The notes under the pieces were generated by a model. That model was given only the letters and a program-made list of their open reading frames with translations. It searched no databases and had not been told where the DNA came from. A program made the translations under genes and the position numbers. Positions 9,984-64,000 of a stretch of 64,000 nucleotides of DNA are shown one piece after another (position 1 is the first letter of the stretch; each line of letters opens with the position of its first letter). This stretch comes from Salpingoeca rosetta. Its lineage: Eukaryota > Protista > Choanoflagellata. The stretch lies in NCBI GenBank assembly GCA_033442325.1, contig JAWQFM010000002.1:420444-484443 (forward strand). Direction: 5' to 3'.

Positions 9984-10026
<43 letters not shown>

Positions 10027-10713: not shown

Positions 10714-10751
<38 letters not shown>

Positions 10752-11678: not shown

Positions 11679-12125
11679 CGGGATGTGCTACTTCATCCAC
11701 TCACGCACGCGCACATACGTCGCTGTCGTTGTTTGTGTTGTTGTGCATGCGTGTGCACGTGCAAGTTTATGTATGCGTCATGCTTTGCTTGATCGTGGAG
11801 ATGGCCATTGCATTCGTGTGTGTGTGTGTATGTATGTGTGTGTGTGTGCGTGCGTGTGTGTTTGTCCTTAACAAACAATCGTTACACCCTTTTCATTACA
11901 AAACAAATACACTGTATTGTGTCAGCAGCTGTTACCACGCCGCATCTCACACACACACCCGCGTGCCAGCGCGCTTTCATCATGGAAGATAATCAAATAC
12001 GTGTGCACACAAAGCACAGGAGGTGAGCGACATGTGCACACACACATCGCAGCAAAATAAACAACAAAAGCAGCCCTGCACCACCCGAGTCCAAAAGGCC
12101 GGTACATCACACCACAGCCAATTCG

Positions 12126-20071
<7,946 letters not shown>

Positions 20072-38595: not shown

Positions 38596-38720
38596 GAGCA
38601 CGCACAGTATTCCTGGCGCTGTGCTTCGTCGGCGTTGTCTGTTTCCTGGGGGATGCAGGTGACGAGCAGGTTGGAGAAGAAGGGCAGCAGCGACGGCAGG
38701 CACGCGCTCAGGCCTTGCAC
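35944..38720 (-). CDS. XPO5: Exportin-5, internal fragment (both ends in gaps)
   Basis: LKTLAAFVDWV..LLLMLCELL..AAADCLLLIVERKG..ERAPLL; YTFVKRLAQVITVLGTNQLC; PKNFDDY..FTLHP; QDFSDLEEWNSFFSVYRSQ. These are collinear with my recollection of human XPO5. Confidence 0.88.
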
Positions 38721-38817
38721 CTGGTTGTTGGAGGGAGGCGGGAAGAACGCAGAAGATGGGGAGGAGGGGAATGCGAGGGAGTGAGAGGGTGAGCTGAACG
38801 AGACAGGCACGTGAAGC

Positions 38818-38921
<104 letters not shown>

Positions 38922-39021
38922 NNNNNNNNNNNNNNNNNNNNNNNNNNNNNNNNNNNNNNNNNNNNNNNNNNNNNNNNNNNNNNNNNNNNNNNNNNNNNNN
39001 NNNNNNNNNNNNNNNNNNNNN

Positions 39022-42000: not shown

Positions 42001-45000
42001 CACAGTACTCCAAGAATGACGCTGCGCCCTCGCACTGTGAATACGCGCGGCCGGACGTGAGGGCTTGGCACGCGTCACGCAAGCAGGCGTCGTACAGAGA
42101 TGAGACGAGTGAGTCAGAGCATGTGGCCGAATCAGCGACTGCGCCTGGGCTGAGGACACACAGGCGCTTTGCTTCTGTCAAGGCAGACGAATCGAGGTTG
42201 CACGGGTTTGGTGGAGGCTGTACGGGGCCAATGCATTCGCTGTTATGAGAATCAATGAGCGCGGTGCCTTCAGGAACCTGCCAGCTGTTGGCAAACACGT
42301 ACGTTCTTGCCGTGTTGATACTAGTGTATACATATCCATCCGCCGTCTTGAAGTCGTCGATCGCAGAGCCAGTAAAATCGCCGCATAGGCCGCACATGCG
42401 GCCCTTGAATGAGCTTGTGGCAGAGACTGTGATCCTGGAGAGCGCGTTGGAGATGCGAATCTCAATGCCACTGTGAAGCTCAATGCTCAGGGTTCCGTCA
42501 AGCTCGTGCGAGATTTGTGTGCTGTCCCTAGCAAGCAGCATGGGCAGGAGTGCGGTACTAGTCACTCTCCCGTTGACCATCAGTGTGCCGCTGTGGACCT
42601 CGATGTGATGCTGACCCAGCGTGCGCACGCCAACGGCAAAGGTTCCGGCAGTCGGGTGTGGAATGATTTGCACCTCAAATGAGCTTTCCTCGCAATCCTT
42701 TGCTAGAACGTACGAGCACGTTCCCGCGAAGTCGTACGCACTCAAATCGAATGTGGTGAAGTGAACGCCGCCAAATGCAGAGCAGGTTGCGAGTTCTTGC
42801 GCGCAGGAGGAGCCATCGCCAAACGCAACCCCGCAGCGGTCAATGATGGGCGGCTGCGGCGCCCACCCGCGGTCTTTGCAGAGCATGTCGTACTGGCGAA
42901 TCGCCGACGTGGCGTGCAGTGGGTAGCACATGTCAGCAAGACATGCCTCATAAAACGGCTCAGGGCTGAGCACTCGGTGGCAGGAAGCAAATGGGCCGTC
43001 TGTGTCCACAATGATGGTGCAGCGGCGGCGGCCTTCCTCGATGACCTGCGCATCTGCGTCAGCGCATGGGTCAACGGGCGTTGGCGGCACGGGCTCATGG
43101 TAGCACACGCCCTCCCTCGAAGCAAACAGCGTCGACGGCGCGGACGTGACGTTGACCACGGCCCAGCTCAGCCCAAACTTGTACGCGTTTGTGGTGAGCA
43201 CACCGGCGCTGGTGACGAGGTCGTTGGAGGTGACGTTGTCGTACTTGCCGACAAGACCACAGACGCGGTCGGAGAAGCGGTCCGGGACCCACACGGAGAG
43301 GATAGCGTCCTCAGTGTACTCAATCTCAACACCGTTGCCCATGGTCACAACCAGGGTGCCCTGCAGGGTGCGGGACACGGTGGTGCCGCCCCTGAGCAGC
43401 AGCGGAAGCTTGGTCTGCAGCTGGCCGTCCACAAGCACATCACCAGTGAACTGCAGCTCCACGACCGGTGATCCGTGTGACGTGATGCCAACGCCAAAAG
43501 TGGAAATGCCGGCGTTGGTCACGTTGCGGTTGCGCACGTGGATCTCAAACTCGTTGTACAGGCAGTCCTTGGCAAACACGTAGTCACACGTGCCGGAGAA
43601 GCTAAACACGGTTTTGTCCAGGGTCACGTAGTGGGGGTCACCAAACACGGTGGACACGCTGTACGTCTCCAGGCACGACTCGCCGTTGCCAAAGCACAAG
43701 CCACAGCGGTCAATGACGCTGCTTGCCTCCACGGGGTCTGGGCTGCTCTTGAGGCAGCGATCCTCGTAGGCAGCGTACACGCCGCACGCCTTCTCGGCGC
43801 CGCCGGTGCAGTAGTCGCTGATGCACGCATCAACGTACGCGGACGGGCTGGCCCAGGCGTGGCAGGCAGCATACGGGCCGACGTCGCTGGCAAGTGCGGC
43901 GCAGTAGTCCTCGGCCAGCGCCTGTAGCGTGGCGTTGTTGAGACAGGGACTGTCGCGCTCCAACACACGCGGCGAGCACATGGCGCCGGAAGGGCCAAGG
44001 AAGAGCGCGTCGGTCTCGGGCGAGTGCCAGGTAAGGCCGGCCTGCTCGAAGGTACACGTACCGTTGACGGCGCACCCGGGCACGTTGCTGCCGTACGTGC
44101 TGACGTCGTCCAGGGCGGTGTTGCACAGGCCGCACAGGACGCTGGAGAGACGCACGTGCGCGCTGATGGCGGTCTGGCCCGAGAACGGGTTCCACGAAAC
44201 AACCAAGCCCTCGCGCTGGGCGGTGACAATGAGGTCGAAGCCGTCGCTGCGCACGACAATGCCGCCATCCAGCACGCTCGGCACCTCGGTGACCTCAATG
44301 CCGTCGAGGAACACGCGCGGGCCGTCCAGCTCCAGCGCCTGCTCGCCAATGCGCACAAGCAGGCGCGTAAACGCGTCCGAGCCCTCGGGCTTGTAGCCGT
44401 GGATGGCAAACGAGCCGTGGGCGCAGTCCTCGGCCAGCACGTACGAGCACTGGCCGTGGAACGTCTGCAGGTCGTTGGAGACGGTGGCCACGTGGGAGCC
44501 GAGCACGGCGCACTGGAGGTTGGAGGAGGCGCATGTGGAGCCGTCACCGAAGCACACGCCGCACTCATCCAGCACCGTCTCGATGGCAGTGAAGCCAGAC
44601 TCAATGCACAGGTCCTCCAGCGCAACAATGTCTGTGCATGCGGCCTTGGCAGCCGGTGTTCCAATCAACAAGGTTAAGCTGAGATCGATTATGGCGGACG
44701 TGTCGGTTGAAATGCTCGTGGTGTCCGTGGCAGACTCCGCCTCAGCTGCAAGGGTGATGCAAAAGTCGTACACGCATTGCTCAAACAGCCTGCTGGTTCT
44801 GCCGACGCCAGCGGCAAGACATGTTGCGTACGGGCCAGCGGTATCGCGCAGCACGTGGCAGTAGTCCTGTGCCACTTGCAGAAGCTCTTCAGATTGCTCG
44901 CAAGGGTTGCGGGGTGGGGTGTTTGGATCAACAACAACGGTACCGTTGGCACCAGTGCCACACTGTTCTGGTTTGGCCCACTGGATACCAAACGCCCACG

Positions 45001-48000
45001 CGGCAGCCACGCTGTCACTCAAGTGCGCTGCGCCCATGCAGAGCCCGCAGCCACGTGCCAGCAACCGCTTCCGCACCTGCGTGGTGACGACGTCCTCGCC
45101 GTCAAACGCAAGCACAAGCTGAGGCGTACGCACAGTCAAACCCGCGGCCGCTGTCTCAAGCACGGTGCCGCTGTTTGTCGTGAAGGGGAACTCAAACACG
45201 TACCCGCCATCAACCGTGGCCAGACCAAAGACAAACTGCAGCTCGTCGCCGGTGGAGACGCGTGTGCGCGCCCTCTGCCTGACGCCGTTGAGTAAGATGC
45301 CGCCAGCACCAAACACGGGCCAAAACTTTCTGCGGCGGATACCCAAGAGCGTCGCCAGGGTGAAGTCAGAGCGCATACCGTCTTGCTCTGCAGTCACGTG
45401 CACAACGCTGGGAAGCAAGCGAATGACCTCTGTGGTGGCGTTTTGTGGCCGGTCAAGCTCAACCACGACAGAAGTCCCGCTTTGCGTGTACGAGCAGCGC
45501 TCGAGCGTAACAGAGAGGGAAGACAATCGACAATCCTCCAAAACCGTGTACGCCGACGTGCCCGCAAATGTAAACGTGCTGTTCGTCTCAAAGGGACGTA
45601 CGGCAGATGCTCCACGCAGCGTGCATTTGGTCCACTCATCTGCGCATGCCGAGCCGTTTCCGAAACAGACACCGCAGATGTCAACGACATCCTCAATGAC
45701 GACAAGCGACCGCTTGCACGTGCGCTGGTAGTCAGAGATGGCGGTGCAACTGCCTTGCATCGCAAGTTTCTGGGTGGAAGCAGAACAGTACGAGGCCAAG
45801 CACGCCTCGAGGTATGCAGATGGGTCGTGGACGGAGAAGCAGGGCGATAGTTCGCTGTTGGCACGGGCAAGCACGTTACAGTACTCCGTTGCTTGTGCCT
45901 GGACGTCTCCGCTTGCATCTGCACACGGCCCGCTTGCAGCAGTGGTAGTGTCCTTGGGTGGCGGGACGCACACCTTTGGTGCAAACATGGCTGTTTCTGC
46001 AGATATGGCCAGTGTTTTCGCGTCATTTATAACGCTTGCTACACCGTTTGGAACGCGAGAGAATGACGTGCACCAGCCAAACATTGCGGGAACCCGGTCT
46101 GCCTGAATGGCCAGCTTGACTGAGACGGGCGACACCGTGATGGCAATGCCGTATGCCGGGATGGCGACGGTGACAGTTGCGCTGCTGGACAGCTGCGAGA
46201 CACGCGTGTCGTCCGAGGGGAAGAGCAAAGATACACCAGCACCCGCATCATATGCCACTGTACCCGCATCGCCACTGTGCTGCACCTGAAGCGATCCGCT
46301 GCTGGCGATGGTTAGCTGCCAGCTATTGTGGCGAGAAACGCCGACTGCAAACGTGTCAGTCGTCTGGCGTGAAAGCGTCACCAACAGGCTTTGCGCATCA
46401 ACTTTGTCTGCAAGCAGCAGCACCTCACACTCAGTTGGCACGGTACCCAGTGCAGCATCGTCGAGCGTCACCACAGAATTCACGCCAGAGAGGCTGCACT
46501 GTTCGCTAGTCTGCGCACATGATGTGCCATCACCGTAGCAGATGCCGCACACATCCCGAACGGAGTCAATCTCAAGCAGCCCACCGGTACGCGTGGCGCA
46601 CGCGCGCTCGTACATGCCGAGCAAGTGGCACGCTTCCTGGCGGGCAATTGCCGCTGAGCTGGCAGCACACACACGCAGTACACACAGGCTGAAATACGTT
46701 TTGGTGGGCTCCACGGAGCGGCACTGCTCGTACTGAGCCGTTGGCTGCTCATCGTTGAGGTCGGCGCACAGTGTCTTTGCGAGATCGCACAGCCCATCAT
46801 CAGTCGCTGTCGGAGGATCCACAACTGTGCCGTTGTCGTTGGGTTGAACGTTGCAGGTTGATGCTGACGCGGCTGCAAGGACGTTGCTCGGTGTCTCAGA
46901 CACAGACGCGAGGCACGCACTCCTCGTTTCCCCGCTGATGGAGGCAGCGGTGATGATATTGCTTCCAACTTGCACGTGCGTTCTGGAATCAGCTCCGTCT
47001 GTGACGCGAACCTGAACCAGCAGCGGCTGCGGTGTTGTCGTGCCGCTCGCCACTGCTGTGCCGTTGTACATGTGCACAGTCATCTCCGAACCGTCGTGCG
47101 TGAGCAAGAGGGACGGCAGGTAGTATGGGAAGCCCGTCAGAATGCGATCTTTACCTAGCAGCACACGGCCAGACTGCCGCGGATCAATCAGCAGGGATTG
47201 GACGACACCCTCTTGCTGTGAGCCAGACGCAACAGCTGTTGTGTCATTTACGGTGATGGTCACAGCGCCGGTGTGCACGTTGCGCATTACCTGCAAGTGC
47301 TCCGTCTCCAGAAGCAACACGCTGCATGTTGTTTCGTTGCTGACGTCGCCCAACGTCATGAGAACGCTGGAGCTTGTCGTGTAGCGGGGATCGGGTGAGA
47401 ACGTGATCACGGAGGTGTCCAAGGCCATACAGCCATTGGCGAGGTTGCACGTTGAGCCATCTCCGTCACACACGCCACACACATCGAAACTTGAGACGAT
47501 GCCCTGTACATTGTTGGCAAAGCAATGCTGCTCAAGGGCTGCTAGCCGGCTGCAGCGCTCATTCGTCATCTCCGCATCGGCCGTCGAGCTCGGTAGAGAG
47601 CAGAGGGCGCGAACACATCCCTCGTACACGGCGGTGAGGTTGATTGCTTCTCTACACGGAGCATAGTCGCTTCCAAGCACAATGCTGCACATGCTCTGCA
47701 CACGCTCGCTTGCACCTGCGCTGTCGCACACAGCGTCCTCTGGCTCCGGCGCGTTGCACGTCGGTGATACAAACAGAACGTCGTCGCCAAGGCGCTGGAG
47801 TGACCCAACGCTGCCACCAGCGCAAACGCCGCCGCTGACACGCACGTCTGTCATCGCGGATGTGATATCTGCGCCAGCTCCAGCGCCAGGCAGAAGTGAG
47901 GCATGCACGGCAATGGACCACCCCGTTTGCGATGAGGTGAGGCTCACCTTGACCAGGCCACCAAACAGCGTTACGGCACCCGTTGAACTCACGAGCCCAA

Positions 48001-50990
48001 TGTCGCTACTGCCCAGCATGGCGGGCAGAGTCACATCAGAGCCATCAACAAGAACAGTACTGCCGCCGTCTCTGACCTCAACTGTGATTGTCGTCGTCGC
48101 ATTGCTCCGACTGGTGTTGATGTCGTTCGCACCATTGTCAGCTGGTACGGAGACAGCAATGGCCAGGTCGGCCCCGCCGTTTTGCGTCTGGATGGACAGC
48201 ACATGCGCGCGAGAATCTTCGATGCCAACGGTAGCAGAACTCGCTGAAGAAGAAGAAGAAGACAAGGTCAGCACCTCATACGCGCATTTCTTCTCAAAGA
48301 CTGTGGTTGTAGCGTCAAATTCGGTAAGCAAGCCAAGCCTGCCATCAAGACTGCAGAAAGAGCCGCGGAAGGCGCTCACGTATGGCAGGATGCATGACGA
48401 GCTGTCACCACCACATACCCCACACACATCGCGGGTGGCTGTGGGCAGTCGCAGACCACACTCCTTCTCTGCTCGGGCAATGGCGTCGCACGCCGCAGCC
48501 TCTGATGCGCTGCAGAAGGATTCGATGCATGTACGTACAAGATCGTCCATGCGCGCAGCCAGCGTGGGGCACGTGGCCTCAAAGGCCAGTTTACTTGCAT
48601 TGCTAGAGAGCGCTGAGCAAAACTCCATTGCAGCAGCAAGTGTCTCTGCTGTAGCCGCTGCACACGGCTGCTGCTCTGTCACAGTCACAGACGTGGGGCA
48701 AACCGCGTCGGTGACTGCGTGCTTCTGCACATCTTCAGGTGCTGGTGCCTGGGTGTTTGGCAAAGCACAGAGGCCACATGCCTGATCCTGATGGCCGATG
48801 CCTTGCTCGGGAGCAATGATTTGAACGTTCGTGCTGCTGAACACAATACGCACACCCGCATCTGGGATGGCGGCTGTGACAACACCTTCATCGCTGATAC
48901 CTGCGATGTGCATGTGTGACCCGAACACATGACCAGCAGCAAGCCGCTGTGGTTCAGAGTTGAAGGTGGCGACGGGGACGTCTGATGCACTGCTGACAAA
49001 CAGCGACAGCTTGTCCTCGCCGGCGGAAATGGTGATGGACTCCACGCTGTTGTCGGCGCTCGAAAAGTTGGCGACAATTCCAAGAGGAACGGTGCCGCTG
49101 CTATCGCCACCGCACATCGAGAGAAGGTGATACGTGCACGACGGATACATGGGAACACTGACATCCTGGTAGAAAGACTTGAAGATGCCCCGGAATGCAT
49201 AGTCACATGTAACCTCCCCAGCACAGGGCAGCTCGCTGCTGCAGGGCGTGCACACATCGGTAGCGCTCGGCTCAAGCGTGATAGGTGCCCCGGCCTCCAA
49301 GCAGGCGTTGGCATATGCGTCGCGTGTAGCACAGATTGATGCATGGGCATTTTCGCATGGGGCAGATTCACACGCGTCAATGTACGGCTGTGGATCAACG
49401 ACAGCCTGGCAGGCAGCGAATGCACCGTACCGATCTCTGAGCGCAAGGCAAGCATCCGAGTTGCAAGCAGCAGGCGGCTCCTCTTCGTCTGAGCACGTGC
49501 GGTTGGCAAACTTGAGCAGGTGGCTCGTGAAGCCAACAACTTGTTGAGACCCGTAAAGGTACGGGGAATTGTCCTCCATCAACCCAACAATTGTGTCGTC
49601 GCTGGCAACGCCGTTGAAGTTGCCGCAGAGACCGCACATGCGCTTGCCCAGGAACGCAGCACTTCCTTGAACGGCGATCTTGCCTGTCACAACGGACCAG
49701 GTGACCGTCAGGGTGAGGTCTGGGACAGCCACCTCAAAGCCAGACGACAGACGTGACACCACACTGCTGCCGCCCAGCGCAAACCGAATACCTTCGAATG
49801 GCTCCGTGCCAACGAAAGCTTCCCACACGCCGTCGTTCACGTAGAATGAGACGGTGTCATAGTCAAAGACTTGTACCGCAACGCCAACGACACACCGCTG
49901 AGAGCCGTCACCACAGGCCGCAAGCGTCGCCTGCACCTCAAACGCGTCGGACTCGCAGTCCTTGGCGACGACGTAGGTGCACATGCCGGGGAACTGCCAC
50001 ACGTGCTCATCAAAGGTTTCAATGAGCATGCCGTCGCGCACGGTGCAGGTCGCATCTGCCGCGCACGTGGAACCGTCACCGTCGCACACGCCACAGCGAT
50101 CCACCACAGCGGCGTCGCGCGTGTGGCCCTCGGCGATGCACAGCTCGCTCACCGTCTGCACAAACGTGCACCCAGCCTGCTTGTACGTGCTCTCGCTTGT
50201 TTCCTCAGCTGTCTGGCACACCTCATCAATGCACGCATCAAAGAGGGCGCCAAAGTCCAGCGTAGAACTGCTGCCGCTGCTGCTGCGGCACGACTCGAAG
50301 AAGCCGCTTCCAGGTAGCAGCTGCGAGCATGCTTCCTGTGCAAGCGTCTCGTCCGCACCAGGGATGCTGGCGCACGCCTCCCCGGCATCCGGCGGTGTGG
50401 GCCGCGTGGGCTCGGTGCAGGCTGGGTTGGTGCCCAGCGCGTCGCTGGCGTCAGCAGTCTGCCAGCTGCTGAAGAAGCCCGCCTGTGTTCCTGCCACGGT
50501 GCCGTCGCTCTTGGTAAAAGGGTCGACCCCAGGGAAGCCGCCACACACGCCCTCAACGGCCCCAGCGTACACATCCTCCGCCACCTTCACCACGGCCTCG
50601 TAGCCGTCCCATGCCACCAACACCTTGCTGGCATGAAGTTTGGCCAGGACCGTCGCGCCCTCGCGCACGATTTCGTGGTTGTTGATGAGCTCGGCGGGGA
50701 AGGAGGACACGGCGCTGCGGCCAACGCGCACGCTCGTGTCGGATGCAAGCACGATGGTGGGGATGCCGGGGACCTCAATGGCCAGGCCGCCGACGCACTG
50801 CGTTGCCCCGCACGCCACGTGCTTCACGTAGACGGCAAACGCATCCGAGGAAGCAGTGTCGTTGGCCGTGACGCTCATGGTCTGGTTCTGCGTGCGCAGC
50901 ATGACGTAGTCACAGCTGCGCGGCTCCGAAAACACGGCGTCGCCAATCGTGCGCCAGTGGCTCGCACCGGACACGCGGCACGTCTCATAC
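39022..50990 (-). repeat. Tandem array of ~14 VWD(-C8) modules; two further VWD-like domains at ~51040-51480 and ~53050-53540
   Basis: Repeated CxxxG/GDPH..TFD..F.G.C.YVLAKDC, xCGLCGNF.G...D and C8-like CxxL..GPFAAC...P.PY..AC..D.C motifs. Confidence 0.85.
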
Positions 50991-53900
50991 GCACCGTCGT
51001 ACGGCTGCAGCTTGCGCCGCACAATGCCGCCGTCCGTGCACGTGCCCATGATGCCGAGCGACGCGCTGCAGTAGTCGCGGGACACACGCCCGTCAACGTT
51101 GAAGAACTTGCCGGAGAGCGTCACCGTGACCTTGAGGAAGTCTGGGCCGGTGACGACGTACGAGCGCTGCGACTCGCGAACAAGCTTGTACCCGTACCCG
51201 AGCTGGAGCGAGCCACTCAGGTCGAGCAGGGAGCCGCCCACGCGCAGCGCAACGGCCGCCGTCTCAAAGTCCGCGTCCAATACAACGGTCACGTCGTCCT
51301 CAATCACAATGCGCACTTGGTTCGTGCACGAGGCCGAGGAGTACAGGCACTTGACCTGGCGCGCGTACACCTCAAACGCCTCAGTGGGGGACGCGCTCAT
51401 GAGGAACGTGCCCTGCAGATCAAACGTGAAGGAGCGGCCAATCAGGTTGGTGAAGTAACCCTCGCCAAAGATGGACCACAGCGGCAGCTGCACCACAGGC
51501 AGGTCTACGTCAGACACGGAGCAGTCTGCGCCAGACTTGCCAGCCGTGCACGAGGAGCACTGGTCGTCGCCCTGCCAGTCGGGCTCGCACAAGCAGGTGC
51601 CCGAGGTGACCCGGCACGTCCCGTGGTCGGAGCAGGGGTGCACCGCACCGCCCGGACACACACCCGCACACGAGTCGCCCCAATAGCCTGAAAGGCACGC
51701 GCAGCTTGGAGAGCTGGAGGCCGCGTCAAAGGTGCCGAAGAAGCACGTCTGGCTGCAGGCAGCACCGAAGAAGTCTGGGAAGCGGATCACGCCCTGCGGG
51801 AAAGACTGGCAGTACGAGGCGCCGGGCCACGTCGTGACGACGTCCAAGGACGCCTGGCACATGTCCGCAAAGCCAACGATGGGCACAATGCCGAGCGCCA
51901 GGGCCTCGCCTCGCGAAATGTCGGCCGTGCACGAGTCCTCAAAGTACTGGCGGATGGCCGGCCCCAGCTGGCGGCACGTGACCCCAAAGGCGGAGGTGGC
52001 GTTGAAGGCGGCCTGACACCGGCGCTGGGCCTCGATACGAAGCGTGACGCTCGTCCACGACGTCTTGTACAGCGCGTCAATGCCCGTCGACATGCTGTCA
52101 ATGGCAATGTTGGCGTCCGAGAAGCGCCAGGTCGGTGCGCGGTACACGCTGCGCGGTGGCAGGTAGAGGCAAGGGGCGTCAAACTCCGCCGACGCGCAGT
52201 CAATGCTGGACGCGCTGTCGCGCACGCTCTCGCCCTGGCCCTCGTTAAACTTCCACAGGGAGGCGAGCCCGCTGGCGTCTGGCTGCACACTGGTGCCCCA
52301 GGTGCGGGAGATCTCGCGCGCGGTCAGGCGCTTGTTCCAGATGCGCAGCTCGTCAATGGAGCCGACAAAGACAGATGCCGGCGCAGAGTCGCCGCCAATG
52401 GTGGAGAGGCCAAACTGGCCCAGCGTCAGCGTCCCACCGGGGCGGAACGGGTTGCCGGCCAGCACAAACGTAAACGATTTGGGCTGTGGCAGGCCGTCCG
52501 AGCCGATGGTGGGGTGCGACACAAAGTAGTGCAGCTCCAGCAGGTTGTTGAGGCCGTTGAGGACGGGCGCCACACCAGCGAAATCTGGTTCCAGCTGTCG
52601 AGCTCAAGCGCAATGTCCGTTTCGTATACGCGGCCATTCCAGATGATGACGAGCTGCCCCGAGACAAACTCGGGCGGGCACGGCGTGACGCTGTCCAGGC
52701 ACACCAGCCGGTTCACCACGGCGAACGTGTGGCTTGTGGCAAAGGACAGCAGCGTGCCCCCGTGCGCCTCGGCAAACACGAGAAACTCGAGCGTGATGGC
52801 GGCGTCGGAGAACGTGTACAGCGGCTTGCTGGAGCAACCCGTGTCGTTGAAGTGCAGCGCAAACCCTGCCACGGAATCCTCGCGCCGCTCGTTGTAGCCG
52901 GCGTACCCGTACACCACGCCAAAGGGCGAGTTGGCGCGGGTCACCGCCCAGAAGGGCCCAACCAGCTCGTGGATGTTGGTCTGCGTCAGGTTGGTGGAGA
53001 CAATGGTGCCCTGGCCAACGTCCGCGAGGAACTCACCGTCGGCGTTGAACACAAAGTCATTGGTGGGCGTGTCGTCGCAGTGACCGAGCATGCCGCCAGC
53101 AAAGTTACAGATGCCCACGGGTGCGTACATGCGCGCGCTGAGGGCGCGTCCAAACACGCGCACGACAATGCGAATCTGCTTGTCCTCGCTGACAATTGTG
53201 TACGCGTGCGCCCCGGAGCGACGCAGCACGTAGTCTTCGGCAATGGTGAAATCAACAACCTGGCCTCCCAGGCCAACCTCGACCGGCCTGCCGCCAGACC
53301 ACATCAGCACCGCCTGGCCGTCCTCGTACGGCGCGCGAAGCACAAACACCGTCGAGCCCACAGTCACGGCAACCGCCGTCACGCAGAACGCCTTTCCACC
53401 GCGGCACGTCGTCTGTCGCACGTGCAGCTTCAGCTCGGGCTGCTCAGAGTCAAACACAAGCAGCTCGCCAGAGGCGTAGTAGTTGAACGCAGCGCCGTCC
53501 ATGCTCACAAAGTGGCCAAAGCCATCCACAGCAAGGTAGGGCTCTCGCCCGGGCGTCAGCTCGGTCGAAGCCACGGAGCAATCATAGCCAATCCAGCCGT
53601 CTGCACACCGCGAGCAGCTGGTGCGATACGGTGCCTTGGTCGACGGATGCTGCTCTGGTACGTGGTGGTTGGGATACGTGTAGTCAAACTCACGGCGCAC
53701 GCGCCTGCGCGCTGCTTGTGTCGATAATGCGTCGCTGTCGGCGCTGCTGCTCTCGTTGTCCTCGTCACTGTCCAGGTCGCGGCGCGGGCGGTACTCTTGG
53801 TAGTCAATGCCACTCCACCGCAGCTCACACTGGCACTCGCCCGTGGTCGCGCTGCAGGTGCCGTGGCCGTTGCACGGGTTGCTGCCGCCGCCCGGGCACT

Positions 53901-56900
53901 CAAAGTCGCACGTGTCGCCCCAGTAGCCGTGGCGGCAGCGGCACACGGGCTCGTCGAGGCCGTTTGCGGGCGTCGGCGCAACAGTGTCTGGTTGCGTCGT
54001 GGTGCTGCCACCGGTGTCAGAGCCGCCGTCGCCGTCGCCGTCGCCGTCGCCGGGAATGGTGCCCGTGCACGCCGGTGCATCTGCCACGCGGAGGATCAGG
54101 TACTTGTCGTGGAAGTTGGCCTTGGTGTTGGTCAGGACCCACGTCAAGCTGTCGGTTGCCGTGGCCAGCACAATCTTGAACACGTAGTGCACGCGGCCGG
54201 AGCGGAAGCGGGTTGGCTGGCCCAGGTTTTCGTTGGTGCGCGTTGCCGTGGACGCTGCGGTTGATGTGCCCTCCTCAGCAAAGAAGGGTGGCAGGTCTGT
54301 TGCCGCGGGCGTCACAATAAACTTGTTGTCCGGCCCGATGGGGACATTGAGGGGAACCGAGTTGAAGTTCTCGTAGCCGAGCCACACCTCATAAACGCCG
54401 TTGTCCGTCTGAGAGACGCACTCCAGCTTGGGAACAAGCGGGCGCGCATCCGAGGCCAACAGCGATACGTCGCCCGAAGCACTGTCATCCTGCGACCCAG
54501 ACCCGGTGTCCTCAGCCACCACCTCGGAGCGGTCAACGACGTCACCGTGCCCGGCCTTGCAGCGAAGGCCGCAGCCCTCGGCGCCGTAGTCCTCGTGACA
54601 GCGCGTGCAGGCAGGGTACTCCCATCCTTCCTGGCAGTAGGTGCAGCTGGCACCTGTCCAGTGTCCGTTGTCATCATCATCGTAGCACTGACAGATGTCC
54701 TCATCCTCGCCAACGCCGCGGCCGTTCACGCAGTACACGCTGCAGCCCCTCGTTGACCAGCCAATGTAGTTGTCCTCGCAGCGCTCGCAGCCCAGGCCCG
54801 TGTAGCGGTCGGCGCAGCGCTCGCACGCGTCGCCGTCAAAGCTGTTGTCGCACACGCACTCGGGCACGTCCTTTCCGGGCGGCACGACACACTGGCCGCG
54901 GCCGTAGCAGGCAGGGATGCCGGGGCACACCAAACGCTCGCACGCGTCGCCCTCAAATCCGTCGTTGCACAGACAGAACGTGTTGTTGCCCTTCACCAGG
55001 CACAGCCCACGGCTGTTGCAGTCCGGCTCCCCAGGGCAGTCGATAAACTCGCAATACTCGCCCTTGCGCCCGGGCTTACAGTGGCACTGGAGGTTGTCCA
55101 GGGAAATGCCGAGCGCTGGGTCCGGCGACACAAAGCTGCGCCGGCTTCGCTCAGCCACGGCCTCCTGCGAGGCGTGGCCGCGCCCAATCACAGCGCGACG
55201 CCGCCGGTTGGGCGCCGTGCTGTTGCTGTTGTTGTTGCCGCTGCTGCCGTCCATCAGCGTCGAGGTGCCATTGTTGCTGCCGCTGCTCGTGGTGTTGGCA
55301 CTGTCCATGCCGGGAACAGGTGTGCAGAGCAACGTGGTGTTGACAGGCTGGTCAGCGGTGTCAACGTACGTGCGACTTGCTTCGTCAAGGGTCACGTTGA
55401 CACCGTGCACTTCCAGGAACTGCTTGCCGCTGATCTGGTACGTCGCTGTTGCCAGCTGCGTGAGGTTGCAACCAAGCGGCAGAGGCCCATCCCACACCGT
55501 GCAGTTGGGGCCGGCCCAGTCCTGGATGCACTGGTTGCAGCGTGAGCCAAGGATCTTCTCGTTGAAGCACTCGCATTCCGGAACCACGCTATCGAAGTAG
55601 AGGACACACTCTCCCTGCCCAGAGCACATGGGTTCGCCGGGGCACACGTACTGGGCACAGTCCTCGCCGCCAAAGCCCGTGTCACAGTCGCAGGAGGGCA
55701 GCGCGTCCCCGTCCGGCCACACGCACTCGCCGTGGCCAGAGCAGCCGTTGGGACAGTCAAAGTCGTTGCAGTATGTCCCGGTAAAGCCGGGTTTGCACCC
55801 GCACGTGCCGAGGCCGCCGCACTCAATGTCGCAGGCAACACCGGTGTAGCATGGGTCGCACTCGCAGTTGCCGCTGTTCATCGGCACCTGGTTACCGTGT
55901 TCGCACGGCAGCTCGCATGCCGGGCCCATCCAGCCCTTGGTACAGTTGAGGCAAATGGGCGGGTCAACGCCGGCGTAGCACGTGCCGCGGCCGTTGCAGT
56001 CTGGGGTGCCAGGGCAGTCTGGGATGTCGCACCCAGGGCCGCGCCAGCCGGGGTTGCAGAAGCACAGCTGTTCCTCCGAGTTGCACACGCCGTGGCCAGT
56101 GCAGCTCTCGCCCGTGCCGGGGCAGCCCTTGATGTTGCACTTGGGCCCCCACCACGCCTCGTCGCACTCGCATGCGCCATTCACGCACACGCCGTGGTCG
56201 CTGCACTCGCGGTCGCAGTTAGGGCCGTCAAAGCAGACGGCGGGCTCGCACACGCAAATGCCAGAGTCCATGGGGATCTGCGTGCCGTTCACGCAGGGGA
56301 TGTCGCAGGCTGGACCCATCCAGCCGTGGTGACAGCCGGTGCACACTGGCGGATCTTGCAGGCCGGTGCAGTCGCCGCGACCAAAGCAATCTGGCTCGCC
56401 AGGGCAGTCTGGGATGTGGCAGCCCGTGCCAATCCAGCCGGCGTCACAGGCACACTCTTGCGTGGCCACGTTGCAGAGCCCGTGATCGGTGCATGGCGAA
56501 CCCACACCCGGGCACGCGCGCACCTCGCACAGGGGGCCCCACCAGCCAACGCCAGGCACACCGCAGTCGCAGAACGCGTTGCCGTCGTCGTCTTCAGCAC
56601 ACGTGCCGTGGTTTGAGCACTCCAGGTCGCAGCTGAAGCCGGAAAAGCAGTCGTCGCACTTGCAGTTGCCAGAGTCCATGGGCTCCTGGTGGCCGTGCAC
56701 ACAGGGGATCTCGCAGGCCGGGCCCATCCAGCCTTGCGTGCAGTTGCGGCAAACGGGCTCGCCAAGGACCTCATCAAACACACAGTCGCCGCGGTCATTG
56801 CAGTCATCGGGGCAGTCGAGCTCCTCGCAGCCTTCGCCGCGGAAGCCATCGTCGCAGGTGCAGACCTGGGTCACCTCGTTGCAGTCGCCATGCCCGGAGC

Positions 56901-59900
56901 AACTCTCGCCGTTCATGCCGGGGCAGCCGCGCACGCTGCAGTCATCGCCGTACCAGCCAAGCCACAGGCCGTCCGCTCGTCGCTCGCACTCGCACATGCC
57001 GTTGTTGCACGTGCCGTGACCAGAGCACATGATGTCGCAGCCAGCACCGGAGAAGCACTCATCGCAGACGCAGACGCCGGAGTTCTTGGGTGTCTCCGTG
57101 CCGTTGATGCAGGGCTCGTTGCAGTCAATGCCCATCCAGCCATCGTCGCAGTTTATGCAGCGCGGCTGCTCGCGGGGAAGGCCCTCGCACGTGCCGCGCC
57201 CATAGCAGTCGGGGTCACCGATGCAGTCCGGCTGGTCGCAGCCCTCGCCCAGCCAGCCAGCGTGGCATAGGCACTGCTGGGTGCTCGGCTGGCAGTCGCC
57301 GCGCCCAGAGCAGTCAATCCAACGCCAGGGCAGCCTCGGCGCTGGCAGAACTCGCCCCAGAAACCCTCACCGTTGAACGTGCCGCAATCGCAGGTGCCGT
57401 TCACGCAGGTGCCGTAGTCGTTGCACAGCAGCTCGCAGCCGTCGCCGTGATAGCACGGCTCGCACACGCAAATGCCCGAGTCCATGGGCTCCTGGCGGCC
57501 GTGAATGCAGGGCTCATCGCAGGCCTCGCCCATCCAGCCAACCGCACAGCCGGTGCAGCGCACATCGACAGTGCCATCCTCTAATACGACTGGGCGACAC
57601 GTGCCACGGTCATTACAGTCCTCGGGACAGTCTGGCGTGTCGCAGCCAATGCCCTTCCACCCGGGCTCACAGGTACACTCAAACAGGGCTTCGTTGCACT
57701 CGCCGTGGCCACTGCAGTCCAGCGGCACGCCTCGCTGCAGGACCGTGCGCGTGCCGTTGATGACCTGCACAGTGCTGCTGGAGCCGGGGCAGCCGGGAAT
57801 CTCACAGCCGGGCCCGCTGTAGCCGAGGTCAAAGTCGCACTGGCACACGCCATTGACACAGTCGCCGTGGTCACCACACACGGTGTCACAACTGATGCCC
57901 GTGTAGCAGTCCTCGCACACGCAGCCCGCCGTCTGGTTGGCAAAGGCGCCGTGCACGCACGGCAGCGAGCAATCTGGGCCCGTGAAGTTGCTGTTGCACT
58001 GGCACTGCTGCGTCAGCGGGTCGCAAGTGCCTTGGTTGTTACAGGGCGGGTTGCCGGGGCACACGGGCTCCTCACAGGCGATGCCGCGCCATGCACCGTC
58101 GCAGACACACTCTCCGGTGGCGCCGTTGCATTCGCCGTGGCCGTTGCAGTTGCCGTTCTCGCCAGGGCAGCCGGGGCGATCGCACAGCTCGCCCCGCCAC
58201 GAGTTGCCAACCTCTGTTGTGTAGCAGTCGCACTTGCCGTCGACGATGACGCCGTGGCCAGAGCACATGGCATCGCACCCGCGGCCGCTCCAGCCAGGGT
58301 CGCACTTGCAGTAGCCAGAGTCCATGGGCTCCTGGTGTCCGTGCACACAGGGCTGCTCGCAGGCCGGGCCCATCCAGCCGTCCTCGCAAGACTGGCACGT
58401 GGGCTGTCCAGGGGCAGTGGCATTGCAGAAGCCGCGGCCGTTGCAGTCTGGCGTGCCGGGGCAGTCTGGGATGTGGCAGCCAATACCGGCCCAGCCCGGG
58501 CTGCACACGCACTCCGTGGTGGCAGCGTTGCACTCGCCGTGTCCAGAGCAATCCAAGCCGTACAGACCGGGGCAGCCAGGCACCTCGCACAGGGAGCCCT
58601 TGTAACCGAGCTCAAACGTGCACTGGCACTTGCCGTTGACAATGCGGCCGTGGTTGGAGCACTCTGCGTCGCAGCCACGACCTGCCCAGCCGGGCTCGCA
58701 CACGCAGATGCCCGAGTTTGGGGGATCTTGGACGCCGTGGACGCACGGGTCGTTGCAGGCAGGGCCCATCCAGGGGCCACGGCAGTCCTGGCACAACGGT
58801 GTTGGCAGCGTGTAGTTGCAGAACCCGCGACCAAAGCAGTTTGGTGAGCCGGGGCAGTCTGGCGTCTCACAGCCGGGTCCCGTCCAGCCGGGTTCACAGT
58901 CGCACCTCGCTTCAGCGGCGTTGCACTCGCCGTTGCCAGAGCACGACTGGCCAATGCGCATGCGCTCCACGCCGCTCAGGCCACACACGCCGTCTGCCGT
59001 CTCGCCTCCGATGCAGGGCCCATTGCCCGGGCAACCGCGGATGTCACAGCGCTCGCCCCAGTAGCCGGAGAGGTAGTGGCATACGCAGGTCTTGGTGGCG
59101 GAATCAATGGTGCCGTGGCCGTTGCATTCGAGGTTGCAGCTCTCGCCTGTCCAGCCAGGGTCGCACACGCAGATGCCCGAGTTGGGAGGGTCTTGAACGC
59201 CGTGGACGCAGGGCGTGTTGCAGTCCGGGCCCATCCAGCCCTGCTCGCAGTTCTGGCACACGGGATTGGGCAGCGTGAAGTTGCAGTAGCCGCGACCAAA
59301 GCAGTCGGGCTCACCAGGGCAGTCTGGCGTCTCGCAGCCGGGGCCGCGCCAGCCAGGGTTGCACTCACACACGGCGTCGGCGGTGTTACACTCGCCGTTG
59401 CCCGAGCAGGACTTGCCAACACGCATGCGCTCGGCGTCGCTCAAGCCGCACACGCCTTCTGCCTCACTGCCTGGGAGACAGGGGCCGTTGCCTGGGCAGC
59501 CAGGTACGTCACAAAGGTCACCCCAAAACCCTTTCTCGTAGGTGCAGATGCAGAGCTTCAGGTCGGTGTTGTACTTGCCGTTGTCACTGCACTCTGCATC
59601 GCACCCGACGCCGGCCCAGCCGGGATCGCACACGCAGATGCCCGAGTTTGGCGGGGTTTCCGTGCCGGCAACGCACGGCTCGTCACAGCCGTACCCCATC
59701 CAGGGACCCACGCAGTCCACGCAGCGCACAATGTCGTAGTTGGTGGAGTCGCACGTGCCTCTGTCATGGCAGTCGGGCTCACCGGGGCAGTCTGGGATGT
59801 GGCAGCCGACGCCGCGCCAGCCGGGGTAGCAGGTACACGTGTGGTCTGCGTTATTGCACTCGCCGTTGCCCGTGCAGTCGACGCCGTAGCCAGGGCAGCC

Positions 59901-61148
59901 CGGGATGTCGCACAGGGGCCCACGCCAGCCCGTGAGGAAGTCGCACACGCACTCGCCAGTGGTGGCGTTGATCTTGCCGTGGCCGGAGCACTCGCGGTTG
60001 CAGCCCTCGCCGGCCCAGCCAGGCTCACAGACGCAGGTGCCAGAGTTTTTGGGCGTCTCTGTTCCATGCAGGCAGGGCTCGTTGCAGCCGATGCCCATCC
60101 AGCCCTCGTCGCAGTCGATGCAGCGCGGCGTGTCGGCAAAGTCTGGGCTGCAGGTGCCGCGGCCGAGGCAGTCGGGCTCGCCAGGACAGTCTGGGATGGA
60201 GCAGTCGATGCCCGCCCAGCCGACGGCACACACGCACTGGTGCAGGTAGGCGTTGCATGCGCCGTTGCCGTTGCAGTTGCGGTCGGGGCCGGGGCAGCCC
60301 GGTAGCTCGCACAGCTCACCGTACCACACGCTGTCGCAGTCGCAAACACCGCTTGAGCACGTGCCATGCTCGCTGCACTCAATCTCGCAGAACTGGCCGT
60401 GGAAGCATGCGTTGCAGCGGCACAGGTCAGCGATGCACTGGCCCTGGCCACTGCACTCCTGTTCACAAAACTGGCCACCATAGCACGGGTCACACACGCA
60501 CTGGCCCAGCGGGCTGCACTCGCCGTGGCCGTTGCATGTCGAGTCACGATCGCACTGGTACTCGCAGCGGTAGCCGGACCAGCCGGCATTGCACACGCAC
60601 TCGCCCGCAGCGTTGAGGGCGCCGTTGCTGGCCTCGCAAAAGTCTTGAAAGGAGCATGTCAGACCAGCCCAGCCTGCGTTGCATTGGCATTGGCCGGCAA
60701 CAAGGCTACCGTGGCCGCTGCAGGCGGTATTCACGCATTGCGAGCCGTCGTCGCCGTCGTCATAGGTTGGGCTGCCAGCGACAGAATAGCCCTGTTGGAT
60801 GTCAATGTTTGCTTCATGGAACGCGGAGGTGAAGACTCGTCCACCGCCACCACCGCCGCCGTAAGTTGGTGTGCAAAGGTAGCAGCTGTGGTAGCCGCCA
60901 TTGCCGCCGCGAGCCTGTGTGGTGCCGTGGCCCTCGAGGTAGTCTGCTTCCAACCAGACGCTTCCACCAGCACCGCCACCGCTGCCGCTATGGCCGGAGC
61001 CTCCGTTTGAGGAGGCGCTTCCATCATACTCAAGGCGCGTGGAAGCAATGATTTGCACCGCACCGCCGCCCTCGCTGTATCCTGCCGCAGTGCCGATCAC
61101 ACTCAGGATCAGGCAGATGAGCAGGCAAGCAGCTCGGGCCGTGCACAT
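39022..61148 (-). CDS. Giant secreted Cys-rich protein (>=~7,370 aa, no introns seen): signal peptide, partial Gly-rich repeat, EGF array, VWD, LamG, VWD-C8 array. Two 1-nt frameshifts (~57318, ~52566); C-terminus in gap
   Basis: GCCACC-ATG at 61148 and signal peptide MCTARAACLLICLILSVIGTAAG. Three long ORFs (61454-57153, 57135-52426, 52573-38708) join into one when a single base is restored inside an EGF repeat and inside the LamG domain. Confidence 0.85.
40452..41744. repeat. Identical ~402-nt direct repeat (40452-40853 = 41343-41744, offset 891 nt) inside the giant ORF
   Basis: The nucleotide sequence and its translation NIHVAVSPLFNNATGGLC...DGNGTTTTT occur twice. Confidence 0.92.
52230..52870 (-). 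other. LamG/pentraxin-like domain in the giant protein (spans the ~52566 frameshift)
   Basis: FALHFN..ITLEFLV..GGTLLSF..WNQISLVW / GGTLTLGQ..FVGSIDELRIWNKRLT..LWKFNEGQG. Confidence 0.8.
54560..60740 (-). repeat. Tenascin/teneurin-like EGF array organised as ~11 four-EGF super-repeats
   Basis: Recurring GCPG..CSGHGECN..CxCxxGWxGxxC / xPDCPGxPDCxGRGxC..GWMGxxC / PCxHGxxxPxxSGxCxC / ECSxHG, with a period of about 135-160 aa. Confidence 0.9.
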
Positions 61149-61736
61149 GGTGGCGCACGTCACTGCTGCTGTGTCGCCCGTCGTGCGGGCTTGTTTCTTT
61201 TGTCTCTGTTCTGTATGTGTTTGTGTCTCTGGGATGGATGCTGAGGATGTCGGTGGTGTTGTTGCGTTGTGGCTCGTTGTAGTTCTTGGAACAAGGGAAA
61301 TATGTTGCGGTGTTTCGTGTGTGATGCTGGCCATTCTGCAATGATGTACACAAATCATCGCGAATGAGATCTCAGAGTGTTTTCGGGTGTCGTGTCGCGA
61401 CGCTACAACGAGAGACAAATAGGACAGCACAAGCAAGGAATAGGACAGCACCATTGGGTTGTCTGACTCTTGAGGGAGACATGAATGATCATGTCACCGT
61501 TGTGACATCGCTGCACTTCAAAGTCTTCACTTGTTTATCAAGCCAGCTTGTATCGAGAAAAGCAGAGAAAATCAGAGGCAATCAGACAAATACATGCACA
61601 CACAGTAACGAAAGCACAATGCCATTTCACGACAAAACAATCGAACAACAACGACAAACTTGAGACACACACACTCATACACATGCACGCACACACGCAT
61701 GTTCACAGCCGATGCGCACGCCGCATCAACGTTTCT

Positions 61737-64000
61737 TCACTTTGCCCCTGCACCACCACCTGCATGGTAAGGGTAACATGCGTGGCCATAAGGATCACCA
61801 GCCTCGACACCGCAATACGAATTGCCGTGCTTTCCGCGTCCACCGCGCCCGCCATATGAACCAGCGACGCTGCTGGCGCAGTATTCTCCGTAAGTCGGTG
61901 CTGTCGGTGTTGTTGGACCAGTTTTCGCTGTGTACCCACGGGCGTTTGTGGACAGGCTCGCTCGCTGGTCAACCTTGGCCTGACGTGTCCAGATGGCAAT
62001 CGTGGACGCCGTCACGGAGGAAGAATACTGCATGTGCAGCCTGTCTGCATGCAGGACAGTGATGTCCTTCACGCGTTCGAGCGACTTGGTGTTGCCGTTG
62101 CTGTTTGAGTCAACAATCGAAGCGCCCTTGTACAGAACCAGGTCCTTGAACATGTAGTTGTTGTCCATCCAGCTCCGCTCCGCGGCCGAGCACGTGCCTT
62201 CCAAGCACGTCGTGCGCCCGCCGTTGATGTTCATGCGGGTGCCAGGCAGCAGGTAGAGCGACTGCACGCCAGAGAGCATGCCATGCACGTTGAACGTGTC
62301 TCGCACGAAGAACCGCAGCGTACCCTCCAGCTGGCCGTCAGTATCAACTGTCATGTCCACGGCTGGGTACGACGCCTCAAGCTCGCGCCCGCCAATGTGC
62401 ACCTCGCGGCCAGACTGCACATACAAGAGCCCAGTCAGGTCACCAGTCACAGACTTGAAGAACGCGGGGGCAGAGGGCGTCGTCTTGGTGCTGAACTGCA
62501 AGCGCGCATTGTTCACCATGTGCAGGTGGTCAAAGGTCACCTGGCCTTCATCCAGCACGAACGGATACGTGTTGCGGTTGCGCCCGCGGTTGTCCAGAAT
62601 CAGCGTGTGGAACGCTGCGCCGTCGTCAGGGTGCGAGCGCACATACACGGACCCAACACCGCCGTGCTCCGTGTCAGTGTGGCAGCCGCCGTTGTCAGTC
62701 GACGCGCCGCCGCACCGTCCACCAAACGCCGTCACAGCGCCATCCCATCTGAACTCGTGCGCCGTGATGTGCACCACCACGCGGCCACCAGAGCCGCCAC
62801 CGGAGTATGCGCCACCGTTTCCGCCGTTGGCCTGGATCACGCCGTGGCCAGTCAGCCGCTCCGTATTGACGTAGATGCCACCACCAGAACCGCCACCGCT
62901 GTAGCTGCCGCCGTTGCCGCCGCTGGAGGAAATCATCCCGTCCACTTGCAGTCGTCCGCCAACCAGGAGGTTGATCAGGCCGCCACCAGCGCCTGCGTTG
63001 GACCCGCCGCCGCCAGATCCAGGCATGCGGCCCGAGTTCATAAACACAGAGCCATACACGGAACCAAGGCTGGAGCAGTAGTCACCGCGACCGCCAACGT
63101 TGGCATACGCACCACCGCAGCCGCGGTCACCCGTGTCGGAGCTGGCACCCGGGCCCGTGTTGGCGCCGTAGCCGCTGCCATCAGCAACCAGGCGGCCCGT
63201 GTGCTCAAAGAACGACTCGCCAATGTTCAGCGTGAGCACCTGCGTGTTGCTGCGCACGAGGCCGCCAAATCGGATGTCAAAGTCGGCCACCTCCACATCC
63301 GCGTTGGGCACTTTGATGTTGAGCGTCGCCGTGTTCTTGACCTCTACGGTAGAGAACTTCATGCTGTGCGGGTCCTGCAGGCTGCGGTACGCGTCTTCGG
63401 GGTAGAATGACTTGGACGTCTCCACCACCTCGTACTCAATGCCGTGAATCACCACTGTGTCGTTGGATTTCTCCAGGGTCAACAGGGCTGTGTGGCACTG
63501 GCCGTCACACACAAACTCGCCGCCGCTCTCAACGTAGAGGTGCTCCACATTGGTCAGGCGCCCTTCAAGGATCAGGTCCTCACCGCGCAAGATGAGGTTG
63601 GGCGGCATGAGCAGCTCCGCGTCCTCATCCACGTAGTACGTCACGGGCGCATCGTGCACGTTCTCTGCAGCCACCACCACTTCCACAAAGAAGCGCTGGT
63701 TCGACCGCACGCGAATGATGCCAGTGCGATCACCGCGCACCTCGTGGCCCACAATCGTCACATGCTCTTGATCATCGGGGTGGTAGAAGTACAACTTGGC
63801 ATACCCGTCCACAGTCATCTCGTCAAAGTCGATAAAGTCGCCAGTCGTGTCCATGATGAGCGCCGGCTGAGGCACCACGTTGTTCTCTTGGTCAATGCGC
63901 ACGTGTCGGTGTGGCGAAACAGGGGCGATCTTCTTCAGCTCGGGGTTGTACTTGAAGAGCGCGTACTGTGGACCGCGGTTGCTCTCGTAGGCGTACACCG
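61737..64000 (-). CDS. C-terminal >=753 aa of a protein with ~430-aa Gly-rich (GGGSGGxIxI..LxGxGxIxAxGGxG) repeats; start outside window
   Basis: Uninterrupted ORF. Two repeat starts (PALIMD..FDEM..GDRTGII; PFVLDE..FDHL..GDLTGLL). It ends at GGGAGAK-TGA, in the middle of a repeat. Confidence 0.85.
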   Translation of the reverse strand, partial: VYAYESNRGPQYALFKYNPELKKIAPVSPHRHVRIDQENNVVPQPALIMDTTGDFIDFDEMTVDGYAKLYFYHPDDQEHVTIVGHEVRGDRTGIIRVRSNQRFFVEVVVAAENVHDAPVTYYVDEDAELLMPPNLILRGEDLILEGRLTNVEHLYVESGGEFVCDGQCHTALLTLEKSNDTVVIHGIEYEVVETSKSFYPEDAYRSLQDPHSMKFSTVEVKNTATLNIKVPNADVEVADFDIRFGGLVRSNTQVLTLNIGESFFEHTGRLVADGSGYGANTGPGASSDTGDRGCGGAYANVGGRGDYCSSLGSVYGSVFMNSGRMPGSGGGGSNAGAGGGLINLLVGGRLQVDGMISSSGGNGGSYSGGGSGGGIYVNTERLTGHGVIQANGGNGGAYSGGGSGGRVVVHITAHEFRWDGAVTAFGGRCGGASTDNGGCHTDTEHGGVGSVYVRSHPDDGAAFHTLILDNRGRNRNTYPFVLDEGQVTFDHLHMVNNARLQFSTKTTPSAPAFFKSVTGDLTGLLYVQSGREVHIGGRELEASYPAVDMTVDTDGQLEGTLRFFVRDTFNVHGMLSGVQSLYLLPGTRMNINGGRTTCLEGTCSAAERSWMDNNYMFKDLVLYKGASIVDSNSNGNTKSLERVKDITVLHADRLHMQYSSSVTASTIAIWTRQAKVDQRASLSTNARGYTAKTGPTTPTAPTYGEYCASSVAGSYGGRGGRGKHGNSYCGVEAGDPYGHACYPYHAGGGAGAK

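Follow-up and report, generated by a model that had tools for sequence, protein, structure and literature searches.

A probable gene fission within a folded module of a giant extracellular protein of the choanoflagellate Salpingoeca rosetta

In 'Rosetta stone' gene pairs, a gene that is composite in some genomes is split in others and, to our knowledge, most described gene fissions fall between domains. Extracellular chains can also be divided after synthesis, as in the SEA domain of mucins, the GAIN domain of adhesion G-protein-coupled receptors and the S1 heterodimer of Notch, in which one polypeptide is cut after folding and the chains are held together non-covalently, and some naturally split proteins (for example, the split DnaE intein and split archaeal enzymes) reassemble. 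Here we analyse a stretch of 64,000 nucleotides (nt) of the Salpingoeca rosetta genome (GCA_033442325.1, contig JAWQFM010000002.1, forward-strand positions 420,444 to 484,443; hereafter the window), in which, on the minus strand, an upstream Gly-rich beta-solenoid open reading frame (ORF) stops inside a module and a downstream ORF in the same frame resumes that module behind a signal peptide. We consider it likely that this arrangement arose by gene fission, a derived event that split a giant extracellular protein within one of its folded modules, a reading supported by an RNA 3′ end, a second genomic copy with the same layout, a public two-gene annotation, homologues that are continuous across the break and a complex prediction that passed its controls.

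As in gene fission pairs, what is a single chain in relatives would here have become two adjacent, co-oriented genes, the upstream one gaining a stop and a poly(A) site and the downstream one a start codon; the locus differs from them in that the break lies inside one beta-solenoid module, the second gene would also have needed a signal peptide, and the split is kept in two paralogous copies. The likeness to SEA, GAIN and Notch S1 proteins is proposed as an analogy only (that is, two extracellular chains may each give strands to one fold), whereas here the cut is in the genome, evidence for a SEA domain, a GAIN domain or a furin site is absent, and two separately translocated chains would have to assemble. 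Like the split DnaE intein and the split archaeal enzymes, the locus may yield one fold from two genes by predicted fragment complementation, but it lacks splicing chemistry, concerns a eukaryotic secreted protein and has a reassembly that is modelled. The module itself belongs to a Gly-rich beta-solenoid family that includes bacterial 'beta strand repeat-containing proteins' and animal proteins (Actinostola QZH41_003345, Mactra ACF0H5_010636 and Mya MAR_011998), with which it shares the motifs GYxxxxGPG ... YG..P..GSGGG / GGGxxxI...DGxIxAxGG...GGGSGGSIW...GxGxIxAxGG...GGGGGRI and the predicted beta-solenoid fold; in contrast to the locus, the module is continuous in every relative inspected, and the family has neither a Pfam model nor a solved relative. 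The downstream chain shares EGF_TEN, EGF_Teneurin, VWD and C8 domains with teneurin-type EGF and VWD–C8 matrix proteins, but is not an orthologue of them.

Two halves of one beta-solenoid module

The upstream ORF (61740–63998, minus strand, as are all coordinates of the locus) comprises the 753-codon 3′ part of a frame that runs off the window, is covered by 2011 transcript contigs and has an RNA depth of 2–9 in two raw RNA runs. Its C-terminal end, ...YPYHAGGGAGAK, is followed by TGA at 61739–61737, and the last stretch of the window piece (residues 687–753, 61740–61940; RGYTAKTGP...HAGGGAGAK) is the first, irregular Gly-rich half of a module. In the same frame, 588 nt past the stop, GCCACC-ATG at 61148 opens the downstream ORF, which begins MCTARAACLLICLILSVIGTAAGYSEGGGAVQII... 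and stays open to 57153. The product of this ATG reads MCTARAACLLICLILSVIGTAAG up to the predicted cleavage site and YSEGGGAVQII after it, so that the missing half of the module resumes at 61073, behind the ATG and the signal peptide. The predicted mature N terminus (residues 24–125, 60774–61079) consists of YSE and the second, regular half of the module, and is followed by a teneurin-type EGF array (57153–60773), which is open up to a 1-nt deletion at 57319/57318. The DNA between the two ORFs has a GC content of 0.41–0.48 (approximately 0.60 outside) and contains five in-frame stops. A GT at 61740–61739 and an AG at 61076–61075 bound a 666-nt phase-2 interval (61075–61740), the removal of which would give a product reading GAGAN-EGGGAV. 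All of these positions and peptides (the stop, the GCCACC-ATG, the signal peptide, the GT and AG, and the shared frame), which a first-pass annotation had proposed from the sequence, were reproduced on the minus strand.

The two ORFs are halves of one module, because paralogous modules are open, and homologues continuous, across the break. Seven distinct paralogous modules in the genome are open through the equivalent point (...GS.GG....G followed by GGGxxxI...), and the first halves of these intact modules align with that of the split module. P0010, a 902-amino-acid (aa) eukaryotic protein from a Logan contig, matches downstream residues 26–604 with its residues 246–809 (43% identity, E = 2e-132), the alignment starting exactly at E26, whereas its residues 222–246 match the last 23 residues of the upstream ORF, a match that is weak by itself but collinear. 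P0132, an uninterrupted 154-aa ORF on a Tara Oceans scaffold, matches the upstream end with residues 35–54 (E = 2e-4) and the downstream mature N terminus from residue 61 (61% identity, E = 3e-16), and in the sea-anemone protein P0367 the upstream end aligns to residue 2470 and downstream G27 at residue 2476. The relatives thus encode both parts in single collinear ORFs, which bears out the earlier suggestion that the halves come from one repeat. Given that these homologues and the seven paralogous modules are continuous across the split, the continuous state is ancestral and the split derived. Among the 150 best representatives of an exhaustive search, the match begins at query residues 13–38 (mostly 19–26), and the half-module is internal or has first-half residues ahead of it, the few N-terminal matches being fragments. 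A recurrent 'signal peptide plus second half' architecture was looked for and not found; the short matches at N termini are pieces of exons or contigs in which residues of the first half are still present.

The upstream chain is built of super-modules of approximately 450 aa, each consisting of regular beta-rungs and then a Gly-rich module, and its relatives include many bacterial 'beta strand repeat-containing' proteins and giant animal proteins. Pfam assigned no family to the upstream ORF (a sub-threshold match to DUF6887 only), a search of the ESM Atlas with the super-module family returned unnamed clusters only, and Foldseek against the PDB found nothing at E ≤ 0.001, the weak matches being beta-helix proteins only. 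An AlphaFold2 model of P0010 residues 60–370 consists of repeated strands that form a beta-solenoid (predicted local distance difference test (pLDDT) 67.6; predicted template modelling score (pTM) 0.72), in which a long strand modelled with confidence (residues 191–202 of the model) begins just after the break, whereas the first half is irregular and modelled with lower confidence. In the downstream chain, the signal peptide and half-module precede teneurin-type EGF arrays and then seven VWD stretches with C8 domains. The Pfam matches above the gathering score are EGF_Teneurin (73.6 bits) and EGF_TEN (68.2 bits) and, further along, EGF_TEN (180.8 bits), VWD (442.7 bits) and C8 (153.6 bits), and neither a teneurin YD-shell nor a transmembrane segment was seen in the readable part of the chain. 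Its open frames extend for 1331, 1569 and 4621 codons without an in-frame stop.

The predicted signal peptide (residues 1–23, 61080–61148) was judged by a simple n/h/c-region rule and Kyte–Doolittle hydropathy, its cleavage site (AAG/YSE) being a prediction. It combines a charged n-region (MCTAR), an uncharged hydrophobic core within the expected 10–15 residues (AACLLICLILSVIG) and small residues at −3 and −1 (TAAG/Y), and is the sole strongly hydrophobic segment of the downstream chain (Kyte–Doolittle 2.18). Under the same rule, only 12 of the 2110 ATGs in the window (0.6%), including that at 61148, start a comparably signal-peptide-like sequence. The peptide is identical in the second genomic copy described below and is also the N terminus of a public 9217-aa gene model. 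No counterpart of it was found in the continuous homologues P0010, P0132 and P0367, and no other DNA copy of the signal-peptide exon was found in the genome. The start codon and signal peptide thus appear to be new acquisitions of the downstream gene.

The second copy and the RNA 3′ end

In the genome searched (a 55.4-Mb assembly of 68 contigs), the window copy lies on contig C2 and a paralogous copy on C34. The upstream open frame of C34 (3288 aa) has its stop at the same codon position, where it reads ...GAGSN-TAA, with CTAATT in place of the GTGAAG of the window. In C34 the stop is followed by a (GT)n tract, and the spacer measures 1533–1534 nt (565 nt in the window). BLAST homology between the copies ends at 61741 and resumes, at 98.9% identity, at 61175, which lies 27 nt ahead of the ATG and 100 nt short of the proposed acceptor; the 27-nt leader (61149–61175, with GCCACC at its end), the ATG and the signal peptide therefore lie within the conserved block. 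Similarity between the spacers is confined to tracts at equivalent positions, GT-rich behind the stop and AC-rich ahead of the ATG, a pattern that would fit one ancestral split followed by spacer turnover. A mobile-element origin of the spacers was considered and rejected, given that neither recurs in the genome apart from its microsatellite tracts. The upstream ORF is under purifying selection, the ratio of non-synonymous to synonymous substitution rates (dN/dS) between C2 and C34 being 0.24 over 749 codons of the upstream ORF, the one part for which it was measured. Along the same codons dS ranges from 0.006 to 0.25 in a mosaic, which suggests that gene conversion may be ongoing between the paralogous giant genes. 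At 61873–61929, the window copy and that on C34 (L006) differ in a hypervariable patch with a 12-nt (4-codon) indel, YTAKTGPTTPTAPTYGEYCASS versus YTIRTGPTTPSGSSCRDS. Within this patch, a DNA contig of run X1 differs by many substitutions and small deletions, although its context is of the C2 type; it may come from a variant strain or from gene conversion, or may be chimeric.

The same layout is present in public data. The upstream ORF of the sister copy is 100% identical to the hypothetical protein PTSG_13036 of S. rosetta (3257 aa; GCA_000188695.1, scaffold GL832990.1), which corresponds to M32–N3288 of the C34 open frame and ends ...HAGGGAGSN; the next public gene begins 1557 nt later and encodes 9217 aa, with the same N terminus as the downstream ORF (MCTARAACLL). 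Because an older assembly and its annotation both show two genes, the layout is no artefact of the new assembly. A literature search found no papers that mention PTSG_13036, and for choanoflagellates and gene fission it returned general background only, as is the case for PMC4224340 on gene fission pairs; it seems to have gone unremarked that one module is divided between the two public genes. The N terminus of PTSG_13036 is the first Met of the open frame and is arbitrary, as the solenoid continues upstream in another frame (L033 ORF 8100–10055, overlapping 10001–19774); the real gene is therefore larger, and the PTSG_13036 model is broken by a frameshift or gap.

RNA was mapped using two raw stranded runs (X21 and X22) and contigs from two other studies; junctions with fewer than three reads were not listed, and reads from the coding part cannot be assigned to one or other of the two near-identical copies. 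Sense depth in X21 and X22 was 7.8 and 5.2 over 61742–61875, 4.1 and 3.9 over 61608–61741 (past the stop and through the proposed donor), 0.7 and 1.3 over 61474–61607, and zero over 61340–61473. A halving of depth at the stop is expected, because coding reads can come from both copies, whereas the untranslated region (UTR) is copy-specific. A 2011 transcript contig (X13) covers 61526–62795 without splicing, its end lying 211 nt beyond the stop and a few bases past a poly(A)-signal-like hexamer (GATAAA, 61534–61539). In eight runs, drawn from four studies, the recovered share of the query words was 0.48, exactly that of 61526–62300 within the query. The upstream gene has its own stop and its own transcript 3′ end, with a 3′ UTR at 61526–61736 and reads that fade by approximately 61526, so the transcript end that a fission would place after 61737 is found there.

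Beyond this end, RNA depth and the comparison with the C34 spacer delimit an unconserved spacer (61176–61525) that presumably holds the promoter and 5′ UTR of the downstream gene, and one sense read (X22) at approximately 61167–61267 is compatible with this 5′ UTR. Run X21 also contains one antisense read pair at 61140–61339, just upstream of the ATG, which may reflect an antisense transcript or library noise. A further in-frame ATG at 61454 (MVLSYSLLVLSYLSLVVAS..., hydrophobic) opens the longest ORF that contains the downstream gene; given that no RNA covers the stretch in which it lies and that the sister copy holds nothing homologous to it, its use is unlikely.

The first-pass annotation had offered the 666-nt interval as an intron, the splicing of which would switch between one fused and two separate proteins. 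Under such a scheme there is a single gene with alternative splicing or an intronic polyadenylation switch, in which most transcripts would end at an intronic poly(A) site and a minority would be spliced from 61741 to 61074 into a fused mega-protein, the ATG and signal peptide being used only from a separate internal promoter or never. The GT and AG of the window are in phase and would restore a seamless module if joined, the downstream depth is several-fold below the upstream depth (as read-through splicing would give), and rare junctions could have escaped notice, as those with fewer than three reads are unlisted and 2 and 4 reads mapped only partly. However, no 61741-to-61074 junction with at least three reads is listed for the two raw runs; at this low read depth, coverage continues through the donor into the 3′ UTR, and the depth just 3′ of the acceptor (60938–61071) is 0 and 0.4. 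The splice sites are also not kept in the sister copy, which reads AAC/TAATTT where C2 reads AA/GTGAAG and in which the one GT that is in phase, a poor GTCAAA, lies 6 nt upstream. Conservation between the copies takes in the leader, ATG and signal peptide, starting 100 nt ahead of the acceptor instead of near it, and the public annotation has two genes. The intron thus found no support, and we regard a switch of this kind, together with the use of the ATG that it entails, as unlikely.

Predicted docking of the two chains

Upstream residues 520–753 and downstream residues 24–140 were folded together alongside controls, and the pair reached an interaction prediction score from aligned errors (ipSAE) of 0.83 (runs 0.85, 0.80 and 0.83), against 0.00 for the best control. 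In calibration, 51 of 78 solved complexes attained the mark for this score, as did 2 of 108 mismatched pairs (for eukaryotes, 39 of 65 and 2 of 126). The predicted complex has 328–335 contacts, at least 92% of which agree between runs, and a partner pLDDT of at least 74. Its tightest contacts join residues 667–685 of chain 1 to residues 30–48 of chain 2; in the model, chain 2 thus extends the stack, its first rung lying on the last regular rung of chain 1. It is therefore plausible, on this model, that the halves could re-form the solenoid. As for the two secreted, reassembling chains envisaged in the first-pass annotation, the fission is supported and the two-half complex prediction was passed, whereas secretion of the upstream chain and the binding itself stay predicted.

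More tentatively, and with somewhat less than even confidence, we suggest that the locus may encode a natural 'split solenoid', in which a giant beta-solenoid (chain 1) and an EGF/VWD matrix protein (chain 2) would be exported separately and dock by rung-on-rung strand complementation. As there are two paralogous pairs with near-identical break points, upstream and downstream chains could also mix combinatorially.

The case for fission and its meaning

Several observations weigh against a functional fission of this kind. RNA depth over the downstream gene is low (0–2.5), its presumed 5′ UTR contains only the single sense read noted above, and a minor spliced isoform could persist below the three-read threshold. 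Export of chain 1 is presumed from its domain type only, and the complex prediction supports binding without showing it, because the model may merely recognize one fold cut in two. Compared with the sister copy, gene 2 of the window also lacks 1 nt at 57319/57318 (GGCGTTGG-ATTGAC versus GGCGTTGGCATTGAC), a loss that shifts the frame to a stop at 57153; the correct frame continues in ORF 52426–57135, and the sister copy is in frame there. A second apparent 1-nt frameshift, at approximately 52560 (minus strand) in a LamG/pentraxin-like region (...QISLVWRP, then LNGLNNLLELHYF in the next frame), joins ORF 52426–57135 to ORF 38708–52573 and is without intron signals. The two frameshifts are either long-read assembly errors or recent damage, and the window copy of gene 2 may be truncated or decaying.

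These frameshifts and the low downstream RNA depth are what would be expected if the gene were simply broken, that is, if the spacer were a disruptive insertion, the upstream part surviving in truncated form and the downstream part being a decaying remnant with a fortuitous ATG and hydrophobic stretch. Such a history is improbable in our view: open frames of 1331, 1569 and 4621 codons are unexpected if a pseudogene is old, two copies retain the split although their spacers can no longer be aligned, the sister copy keeps the frame where the window copy has its first frameshift, a signal-like peptide of this quality begins at so few of the window ATGs, and the frameshifts themselves may stem from long-read assembly. 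Mis-assembly of the spacer or stop, conceivable for a repetitive giant gene assembled from long reads with apparent 1-nt indels elsewhere in the chain, is effectively refuted, as both RNA contigs and raw RNA reads contain the stop and 3′ UTR, 60000–63883 is covered by DNA contigs of a further run, and the sister copy has the same architecture in an independent older public assembly. Elsewhere in the window, a single-exon gene for a spliceosomal Yju2/Saf4 protein lies at 25259–26410 on the plus strand (Pfam E = 4e-87); its nearest matches are proteins from choanoflagellate transcriptomes and from Monosiga brevicollis, with animal proteins next.

Gene fission, as we envision it, would have started from an ancestral gene in which Gly-rich beta-solenoid super-modules continued into a teneurin-type EGF array and VWD/C8 domains, and in which non-coding DNA came to lie inside the Gly-rich loop of one module. 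Gene 1 now ends at the stop just after the irregular first half, with its own 3′ UTR of approximately 211 nt and poly(A) site, whereas gene 2 would start with a new ATG and signal peptide, presumably from a promoter of its own. If both chains enter the secretory pathway, cleavage would expose YSE as the N terminus of chain 2, ahead of the first regular beta-rung of the split module, and this free N-terminal rung may then stack on the last rung of chain 1, giving the solenoid as a non-covalent two-chain protein.

Fission rarely cuts a folded domain of a secreted protein, where the second half has to gain a start codon, promoter and export signal together. In this case the two halves are open in each of two paralogous copies, the upstream part is under purifying selection, and a model predicts that the fold is re-formed. 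If true, the split solenoid would mean that an extracellular matrix or adhesion protein of a choanoflagellate contains a non-covalent joint that is encoded genetically. Public gene models in the cluster (for example, the N terminus of PTSG_13036) need revision with long reads. Because S. rosetta can be manipulated genetically and serves as a model for how animal cell adhesion and matrix originated, the locus is a natural case, open to testing, that bears on how giant extracellular proteins break into interacting subunits and on how signal peptides arise de novo.

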